A DNA stretch of 64,000 bases. It comes from Dimorphilus gyrociliatus (Eukaryota > Animalia > Annelida). The notes under the pieces were generated by a model. That model saw nothing but the letters and a program-made list of their open reading frames with translations. It was not told the origin of the DNA and searched no databases. Position numbers and translations under genes: made by a program. The stretch lies in the NCBI GenBank assembly GCA_904063045.1, contig CAJFCJ010000002.1, positions 2,192,422-2,256,421 on the forward strand, in the 5' to 3' direction. Positions 3,207 to 5,053 of the stretch are shown here, piece by piece (positions within the stretch are counted from its first letter, which is position 1; each line of letters begins with the position of its first letter).

Positions 3207-5053
3207 TCACAAATTTGATACAAGTGATAGCCAAGCCTTTATCAAATTATGGGCAATTGCCTGAGATGGAGGAATGCGTACATTAGGATGCTTTCCAGAA
3301 AGTAATTGTGCAACTTCCTCTCGGGAAAACCACCTGGCATCACGTAACTCTGTCTCATCAACTTTTATCTCTTCCGTCGTAGCAAATGCAAGGCATCCTA
3401 ACATCAATGAAGCCGGCATTGGCCATGGTTGGGACGAATGATATTGCACACGACCTACTTTGATTCCTGTTTCTTCCCAAACTTCTCGTCTAACAGCATC
3501 TTCAATGGTTTCGCCTGCAGAATTTAAATACCATTAGAAATATAAATGTCATGATTTTCGAAAGATTCAATTAAATACTCTATTTCAAGTATAAAAAAAT
3601 CATAATCTTATAAACCTGACTCAATGAAGCCAGCTAAGCATGAATAGTAATCAGGAGATTTATTTAAATTACTCCCAAGCAATAGGCGTGTTTTATCAGG
3701 TGATGTTACAGCCATAATCACGGTTGGATCCGTCCTTGGATAACAAGTATTGTGAACTCCTGTTTGAAAAGAAAACTATAATTAATAAACTCACCGTGTT
3801 CAATAAATCCAGCTAAACAAGAGTAGAAACTACGAGGAAAATTAATTCCTCTTCCGAGAAGAACCTTTGATCTAGATGCGTTCGAAACGGCCATAATTAC
3901 CGTTGGATCTATGCGAGGGTGCGACGTATTTTGTATACCTGTTAATTTATTAATGTCCGATAGTGTTTGAAGCGTTTTTTTGAGAAGTTCGATTGAATTT
4001 TTATATATTTATTAAGAAAGTATAATAATAATAATAATAATGATACTTACCACTCCGACTACGGCAAGAATCGTTAGTGCATTGGCGTTTGTGTCCTCCA
4101 TCTTTGACTTCTGATATTGTTCCGCAAGTCGAACAAAACTTATTCCTTGACAAAAATATTCAATGTATGATATTATCAGGAATCTTTTCTATGTAATATT
4201 TTGCAAATAAAGTAAGTTACCTGTCATGCCAAGCTAGTAGTGATCTTGCTTGAGCTGCAATTCCTGCTTGATCCTCGGGGAGACTCATCAAAGACATTCT
4301 TGAGTCTTTTACAAAAAATGCATCTTTAGCTAAATTACAGCAATCATCGCTATTCAGTTGAGATAAATTTATTGCAAAATATGGTTGAATTTTCTCGCTG
4401 AATTGATCTCCATGCAGAACTCCTAAGAAGATTGTTAGCATATCCTGAGAAATAAGACTGCTTATTTTGTCATAAGATACCTGGGCCAAAGAATTATTGT
4501 CTTCCGTAACAGTCAACAATGGAGTTAATTCATGAAAAACCAAATAGACGGTGTCTGGATGTTTACTAAATTTTTCTATCCATTCACTATTTGGTCTCAT
4601 ATGCGCATGTCTATCTAGGGGATTTGAACTAAAAAAGTTCTTGAATTCCTTATTCTGTTTTGTTTTTTTAGATAATTGTTCTTGGGCTACAGTATGATTC
4701 CAAAATTTTGCTATATCTAAGGCAGTTTGACCATTGTGATTAATTAAGCCCTCGTCACCTCCATTTTTAAGTATTATATCAATAATCTCGTGCCGACCAT
4801 TTCGGGCGGCAAACATCAATGCAGTCCAACCTTTTTCATTCGTTGCATTCAAGTTCTTTGTTTCTGGGAGTTTTATATATTAGAATTAACGATTCATTCA
4901 TTGAATATCGTCGCTTTAACTTTATGTATACAATTGGCTGGAGAATACTTAGGGAAACCTACTTTTTAGGATCTCTTCAAAGCGTTCTATATTGCCGTCA
5001 GCAGCAGCATTGCAAAGAGCATCAGTAGAAAAATCGCGAAATGAGTTCATCAT
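3207..5053 (-). CDS. NUDT12: NAD-capped RNA hydrolase / NADH pyrophosphatase NUDT12 (ankyrin + zinc ribbon + Nudix)
   Basis: Ankyrin repeat ([15 protein letters not shown]), NudC N-domain ([12 protein letters not shown]), CxxC..C..C zinc ribbon exon 4145-4051, Nudix box [17 protein letters not shown], and [14 protein letters not shown] motif; GT-AG junctions keep the frame. Contains two alternative 144-nt exons (3938-3795 and 3759-3616). Confidence 0.95.

Follow-up and report, generated by a model that had tools for sequence, protein, structure and literature searches.

Exons 2 and 3 of alpha-tropomyosin are a mammalian steric-interference exon pair. In mammalian pairs of this kind, the downstream exon's branch point is placed too near the upstream donor; the intervening intron tends to be long and the branch point distant. 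Fifty-seven human exon clusters have a donor-to-branch-point distance of less than 50 nt (PMC5740500), and in OGDH exons 4a/4b the branch points lie near the 5′ splice site (PMC7969005). In C. elegans, five clusters (egl-15 5B/5A, let-2 9/10, bet-2, gly-5 and gly-6) consist of exons with lengths that are multiples of three, and their intervening introns of less than 40 nt are never excised; these introns are 14–30 nt long, against a species minimum of ~40 nt (PMC4165533). Double inclusion was never seen in these clusters, and exclusion is enforced sterically rather than by nonsense-mediated decay (PMC4165533).

Here we describe an exon pair of similar design in the annelid Dimorphilus gyrociliatus. 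We analysed a stretch of 64,000 nt (contig CAJFCJ010000002.1, positions 2,192,422 to 2,256,421; hereafter the window) whose NUDT12 gene has two versions of exon 4, named 4a and 4b. Like the C. elegans clusters, the pair consists of homologous tandem exons, each a multiple of three in length, around an intron that is probably below the species minimum. The two cases differ in gene and in phylum. They also differ in that exclusivity was shown by RT-PCR in C. elegans, whereas we infer it for NUDT12, where the local intron minimum is ~54 nt and the spacer measures 35–38 nt. With the mammalian pairs NUDT12 would share a downstream branch point too close to the upstream donor; here, however, the whole spacer is tiny.

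Results

The NUDT12 gene of D. gyrociliatus

The window consists of AT-rich eukaryotic DNA, and its introns are short. Its minus strand carries a five-exon-type NUDT12 gene, with the ATG at 5053-5051 and the stop codon at 3209-3207 (span 5053-3207). The gene model was profiled and searched one exon at a time with Pfam, NF001299 and protein searches. Table 1 lists the features.

Table 1. Features of the NUDT12 gene (positions are those of the window)
Feature	Position	Strand	Evidence and remarks
Exon 1, coding part	4963-5053	-	ATG at 5053-5051; donor phase 1; read from sequence
Intron 1, 99 nt	4962-4864	-	Recovered by conservation-guided splice scan
Exon 2, ankyrin repeats and rudimentary Nudix N-terminal domain	4221-4863	-	Pfam Ank families, PF09296; L001 orthologue 70% identical in amino acids
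Exon 3, four-Cys NADH pyrophosphatase zinc ribbon	4051-4145	-	PF09297, E 3e-08; L001 84% identical
Intron 3, 112 nt	3939-4050	-	4a acceptor without pyrimidine tract; final 11 nt same in L001
Exon 4a, 144 nt, phase 1-1	3795-3938	-	His at Tyr318 position; LLGR and FP positions kept; consensus donor; L001 6924-7067
4a/4b spacer, 35 nt, formally GT...AG	3760-3794	-	Too short for an ordinary intron here; 38 nt in L001
Candidate branch site for 4b acceptor	3780-3787	-	Conserved in L001 alignment; putative role from motif
Exon 4b, 144 nt, phase 1-1	3616-3759	-	Tyr kept; without Arg of LLGR and Phe of FP; good pyrimidine tract, weak donor; L001 7106-7249
Intron between 4b and exon 5, 101 nt	3515-3615	-	Sequence reading and L001 alignment
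Exon 5, rest of Nudix box (catalytic helix), NudC-type SQPWP motif, C-terminal SNL, stop	3207-3514	-	PF00293; NF001299 positions 172-259; L001 91% identical

The Nudix box, G-x5-E-x7-RE-U-x-EE-x-G-U, begins in the last residues of 4a or 4b, continues in exon 5 and is complete with either exon 4. Downstream of the box, SQPWPMPAS in exon 5 is a motif of the SQPWPFPxS type, a signature of NADH pyrophosphatases. The C-terminus is SNL in both species compared below, and mollusc exons have the same ending, predicted to be the peroxisomal-type tripeptide of animal NUDT12. Against the NudC model NF001299, exon 5 scored 107 bits and each exon 4 scored 31–37 bits, values to which the whole-protein cut-off is not applicable exon by exon. 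When exon 2 was searched against protein representatives, its ankyrin repeats drew giant ankyrin-repeat proteins only. Protein searches with exon 2, with exon 5 and with a profile of the N-terminal part did not recover a D. gyrociliatus product.

Ankyrin repeats, an N-terminal Nudix-like domain, a zinc ribbon, a Nudix domain and the SNL end make up the domain plan of animal NUDT12. Mammalian NUDT12 and bacterial NudC (6o3p, 6scx) agree with the worm gene in the order of ankyrin, N-terminal Nudix-like, zinc ribbon and Nudix parts, in the Nudix box, in SQPWP and in the C-terminal tripeptide. By this architecture the gene is the NUDT12 orthologue, a predicted NAD-capped RNA hydrolase / NADH diphosphatase. 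A preliminary description of the window had already called it NUDT12, and this identity was borne out by the domain order, by NF001299 and by alignment with mouse and human NUDT12.

NUDT12 lies between a PP5-type phosphatase gene upstream and a coiled-coil gene downstream, and the trio is also adjacent in a related species (contig L001, see below). The gene order common to window positions 1-8999 and L001 is NHL/filamin-type gene, PP5 phosphatase, NUDT12 and coiled-coil gene. Two segments, at 2972-2748 upstream of the start of the coiled-coil gene and at 5178-5098 upstream of the start of NUDT12, match L001 in several frames, which suggests that these very short intergenic regions contain conserved sequence of a 5′ UTR or a promoter. 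As a separate observation, the last NUDT12 exon is 55–67% identical to many alphaproteobacterial NAD+ diphosphatase fragments, which is unusually close for an animal and a bacterium.

Exons 4a and 4b are tandem duplicates

Each copy of exon 4 is open over 47 full codons. Exon 4a (3938-3795) is preceded by AG at 3940-3939 and followed by a consensus GTGAGT donor from 3794. Exon 4b (3759-3616) is preceded by the AG of the spacer and followed by a weak GTTTAT donor from 3615. The preliminary description had reported two stop-free, phase 1-1 exons of 144 nt with intact AG/GT sites and a 35-nt spacer at 3794-3760, and we found these coordinates to be exact.

The two exons are identical at 83 of 144 nt (58%) and at 25 of 47 amino acids, so that 22 of the 47 residues differ. 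Different codons are used at 16 of the 25 identical residues. Together with the 58% DNA identity, this indicates that the duplication is old and was not homogenised. When 4b was compared with the whole 77.9-Mb genome, the only matches were 4b itself and 4a (E 2.6e-11 for 4a), a similarity well beyond chance. Exon 5 matched the same genome once; the gene is therefore single copy, with exon 4 duplicated inside it. Exons 4a and 4b align to a common stretch of mouse/human NUDT12 (6o3p chain positions 192-237; 46 and 43 bits) and to positions 128-169 of NF001299. Judged by these alignments, 4a and 4b are true duplicates.

Both exons are conserved in a related species

An ORF 70% identical in the exon-2 search led to L001, a 19.6-kb syntenic contig of a related species that was assembled from public reads. 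In L001, exon 4a (6924-7067) and exon 4b (7106-7249) flank a spacer of 38 nt, and the exon lengths, phases and splice-site types are those of D. gyrociliatus. Contigs from two further read sets (L028 and L029) are 100% identical to L001.

Between the species, 3 of 47 residues differ in 4a and 6 of 47 in 4b, with dN/dS values (Nei-Gojobori) of 0.041 and 0.061, respectively. These values are similar to that of exon 5 (0.030). Synonymous divergence was high: dS was 0.8–1.1 for 4a/4b, and synonymous sites were saturated in exons 2 and 3. The introns flanking 4a/4b align at only ~50%. The excess of synonymous over non-synonymous changes gave a Fisher p of ~1e-9 for 4a and for 4b, and the chance that a neutral 47-codon stretch of such composition stays open is ~0.03 per species. 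The protein of both copies is under strong purifying selection. With so few residue changes despite near-saturated synonymous sites and ~50% identity in introns, both copies are evidently translated and functional. The preliminary description had considered that one copy might be decaying in relatives; neither is decaying in L001.

The start of the Nudix box in 4a is unchanged between the species despite synonymous substitutions. Synonymous divergence of 4a/4b was lower than that of the constitutive exons by Nei-Gojobori counts (p 0.001) but not clearly so by identical-codon counts (p 0.17).

The spacer and its splicing signals

Introns in three neighbouring genes, ~16 in all and placed by cross-species exon conservation, range from 54 to 193 nt. 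The 35-nt spacer is ~20 nt below the shortest of them. The proposal that it is shorter than ordinary local introns therefore stands, at 35 nt versus a 54-nt minimum. We also scanned a 264-kb sample of the genome for introns de novo. Candidates rose above decoy only at 55–70 nt (28 versus 10), and below 50 nt this noisy scan of the 264-kb sample gave no excess over decoy (15 versus 13). Because real-donor and decoy candidates were almost equal in number overall (99 versus 95), the conservation-supported introns were used instead. The median intron of D. gyrociliatus is 66 bp, and its splicing is reported to be adapted to short introns, which are spliced efficiently (PMC7854359).

When the spacers of the two species (35 and 38 nt) were aligned, 27 of 38 positions were identical, compared with ~50% in the introns on either side. 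The spacer's first ~16 nt (3794-3780) are conserved in L001 and include a branch-site-like motif. The distance from this candidate branch site (3787-3780) is ~13 nt to the 4a donor and ~22 nt to the 4b acceptor. Only two non-coding blocks hereabouts are clearly conserved in both species: 3949-3939, the 11 nt before the 4a acceptor, and 3794-3780. Each may be an element that controls splicing. When the RNA around the spacer was folded locally, no significant structure emerged (z-scores -1.06 and +0.18), and thus no sign of a structure-based exon selector.

The splice-site strengths of the two exons are complementary, and this is conserved in L001. Exon 4a combines a poor acceptor with a consensus donor, and exon 4b a good pyrimidine tract with a weak donor. 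Such a conserved pattern suggests a regulated choice.

Exon 4 encodes the adenine pocket

In mouse NUDT12, the adenine is sandwiched between Phe356 and Tyr318, the latter contributed in trans by the second protomer of the dimer; the same segment holds Asp322, and Ala354, whose carbonyl binds Mg1 (bioRxiv 10.1101/474478). By alignment, exon 4 covers the segment from Tyr318 to Phe356, including both adenine-stacking residues. The earlier placement of the two exons in the substrate pocket agrees with this, as the positions of Tyr318, Asp322, Ala354 and Phe356 all fall within the exon.

The equivalents of Asp322, Ala354 and Phe356 are identical in 4a and 4b. At the Tyr318 position, 4b has Tyr and 4a has His. 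Differences at the YPR and LLGR positions had been noted from the sequence, and comparison with orthologues confirmed them: 4a reads HPR where 10 of 11 full-length orthologue exons read YPR, and 4b has Ser in place of the Arg of LLGR found in 11 of 11. That Arg and the FP that follows are invariant in the 11 orthologue exons, kept in 4a and lost in 4b. A further difference between the copies is in the loop that follows the LLGR strand, and the half of the ancestral consensus retained by one complements the half retained by the other. In Lottia, whose gene has a single copy of the exon, the Tyr318 position is likewise His. His alone therefore implies no new specificity and is compatible with sole function, which slightly weakens the idea, present in the preliminary description, that the gene has two specificities.

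Predicted vertebrate NUDT12 entries named isoform X2/X3 (P0281, P0282, P0284 and P0305; 414–424 aa) join the YPRV position directly to the catalytic helix; the 38 residues that they lack include the positions of Asp322 and Phe356. These entries are presumably an inactive, predicted exon-skipped form of the region that is swapped in the worm. Vertebrate exon borders differ from those of the worm, and the predicted vertebrate isoforms skip part of the segment rather than swap it.

Distribution of the duplication

A single 144-nt, phase 1-1 exon 4 was found in Lottia (L033), in Pinctada (L034), in two assemblies (L002 and L003) and in two metagenome contigs (L035 and L036). No second exon-4 copy was found within 1.5 kb in any of 80 metagenome loci. 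One other candidate, L031, turned out to be a bacterial match. Mammals, molluscs and the other sampled taxa have one copy of the segment, whereas the worm has two. Since both species carry the pair, the duplication is placed before their split.

In a tree of the 47 residues, 4a and 4b were sisters at first, and resolution was lost after three metagenome sequences were added. The single-copy exon 4 at L036:1501-1641 (Ga0126335_1004238) is 72% identical to 4b and 52% identical to 4a. It is without the Arg of LLGR and has a 4b-like GTTTGT donor. The 4b type may predate both species compared here.

In the Pinctada imbricata NUDT12 gene (L034:13249-13809), a 121-nt unit is repeated 4.6 times in tandem (91% matches), starting inside the Nudix-box exon. 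The length of the unit is not a multiple of three. Either part of the exon was duplicated recently or the repeat is an artefact of assembly.

Discussion

We consider it probable that 4a and 4b are tandem duplicate, mutually exclusive coding exons of a single NUDT12 gene in the compact genome of this annelid, kept exclusive by steric means. Very likely the gene makes two enzyme variants. Exclusive use is the best reading of sequence logic and precedent taken together. Each mRNA would carry exon 3, then 4a or 4b, then exon 5. Joining of 4a to 4b would be blocked by the mere 35 nt between them: the probable 4b branch site lies ~13 nt from the 4a donor, and U1 and U2 could not both assemble on the spacer. 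An mRNA with both exons or with neither would keep the frame, but the first three strands of the catalytic Nudix domain would be duplicated or deleted. Because such products are in frame, nonsense-mediated decay cannot police the choice. The encoded protein points to the same use of the exons. The start of the Nudix box in 4a is conserved and is completed only by exon 5, so 4a would be joined directly to exon 5 in functional mRNAs. Exon 4b keeps the linker from the zinc ribbon to the domain, so it would have to follow exon 3. If 4a needs exon 5 and 4b needs exon 3, one exon is left for each mRNA.

Constitutive inclusion of both exons, with the 35–38-nt spacer spliced as an ultra-short intron and a protein with an internal 48-residue repeat, would be in keeping with the GT...AG ends, consensus donor and pyrimidine tract of the spacer, with the intact frame and with the reported efficiency of this species on short introns (PMC7854359). 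We regard it as improbable: a spacer ~20 nt below any of the ~16 supported neighbours falls where the scan gave no candidate excess (<50 nt), the 4a start of the Nudix box would be separated from the catalytic helix although it is perfectly conserved in protein, and all other orthologues examined have one copy of the segment. Still less probable is that one exon is used and the other is a duplication relic yet to decay. The weak donor of 4b and the weak acceptor of 4a could be read in this way, but these weak sites are themselves conserved. Moreover, both copies are open and keep their splice sites, and dN/dS is 0.04–0.06 (Fisher p ~1e-9) where introns are unalignable; a neutral stretch of 47 codons would have stayed open with a probability of only ~0.03 in each species. 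The tandem arrangement alone might suggest an assembly artefact or collapsed/uncollapsed haplotypes, an explanation to which we give almost no weight. The copies are only 58% identical in DNA, and the artefact was refuted by the same arrangement in L001, L028 and L029, assemblies of independent read sets from another species.

The most probable alternative accepts mutually exclusive use but takes the two enzymes to be biochemically equivalent, the pair being kept by partitioned expression (stage, tissue or sex) or by complementary degenerate changes. The Asp322, Ala354 and Phe356 equivalents, which are all the catalytic positions of the exon named in the mouse paper, are the same in both copies; the His of 4a also occurs in single-copy Lottia; and the two copies hold complementary halves of the ancestral consensus. 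We think this a real possibility, short of an even chance. Against it, the 22 of 47 differences are themselves conserved between species, suggesting that each version is tuned, and one of them is the adenine-stacking residue that acts in trans. A further proposal is that the two exons make differently tuned adenine/cap pockets, that the trans Tyr/His position creates chimeric pockets in 4a/4b heterodimers, and that splicing switches or mixes specificities. We hold this to be rather unlikely.

Returning to steric, mutually exclusive use of 4a and 4b, the NUDT12 pair is a new example of a known splicing arrangement and not a new kind of mechanism. In our searches of the literature, no description of such alternative exons in NUDT12 was found. 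The locus offers a clean, conserved example of putative steric exclusion by a sub-minimal spacer in a spiralian, a group in which the rules of splicing have received little attention.

Few animal enzymes are known to strip NAD caps from RNA. NUDT12 is among them, and the determinants of its substrate range are still being worked out. The exon pair amounts to a natural swap experiment: the 47 residues behind the adenine sandwich and the initial strands of the catalytic domain come in two versions, both under strong constraint. If the two pockets do differ, the worm could switch or mix specificities for NAD caps versus NADH or caps made of other metabolites, and might do so in a stage-, tissue- or sex-dependent way. 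Comparison of the isoforms would show which positions of the pocket and the dimer interface tune the enzyme, and whether an animal regulates metabolite-cap surveillance by splicing.
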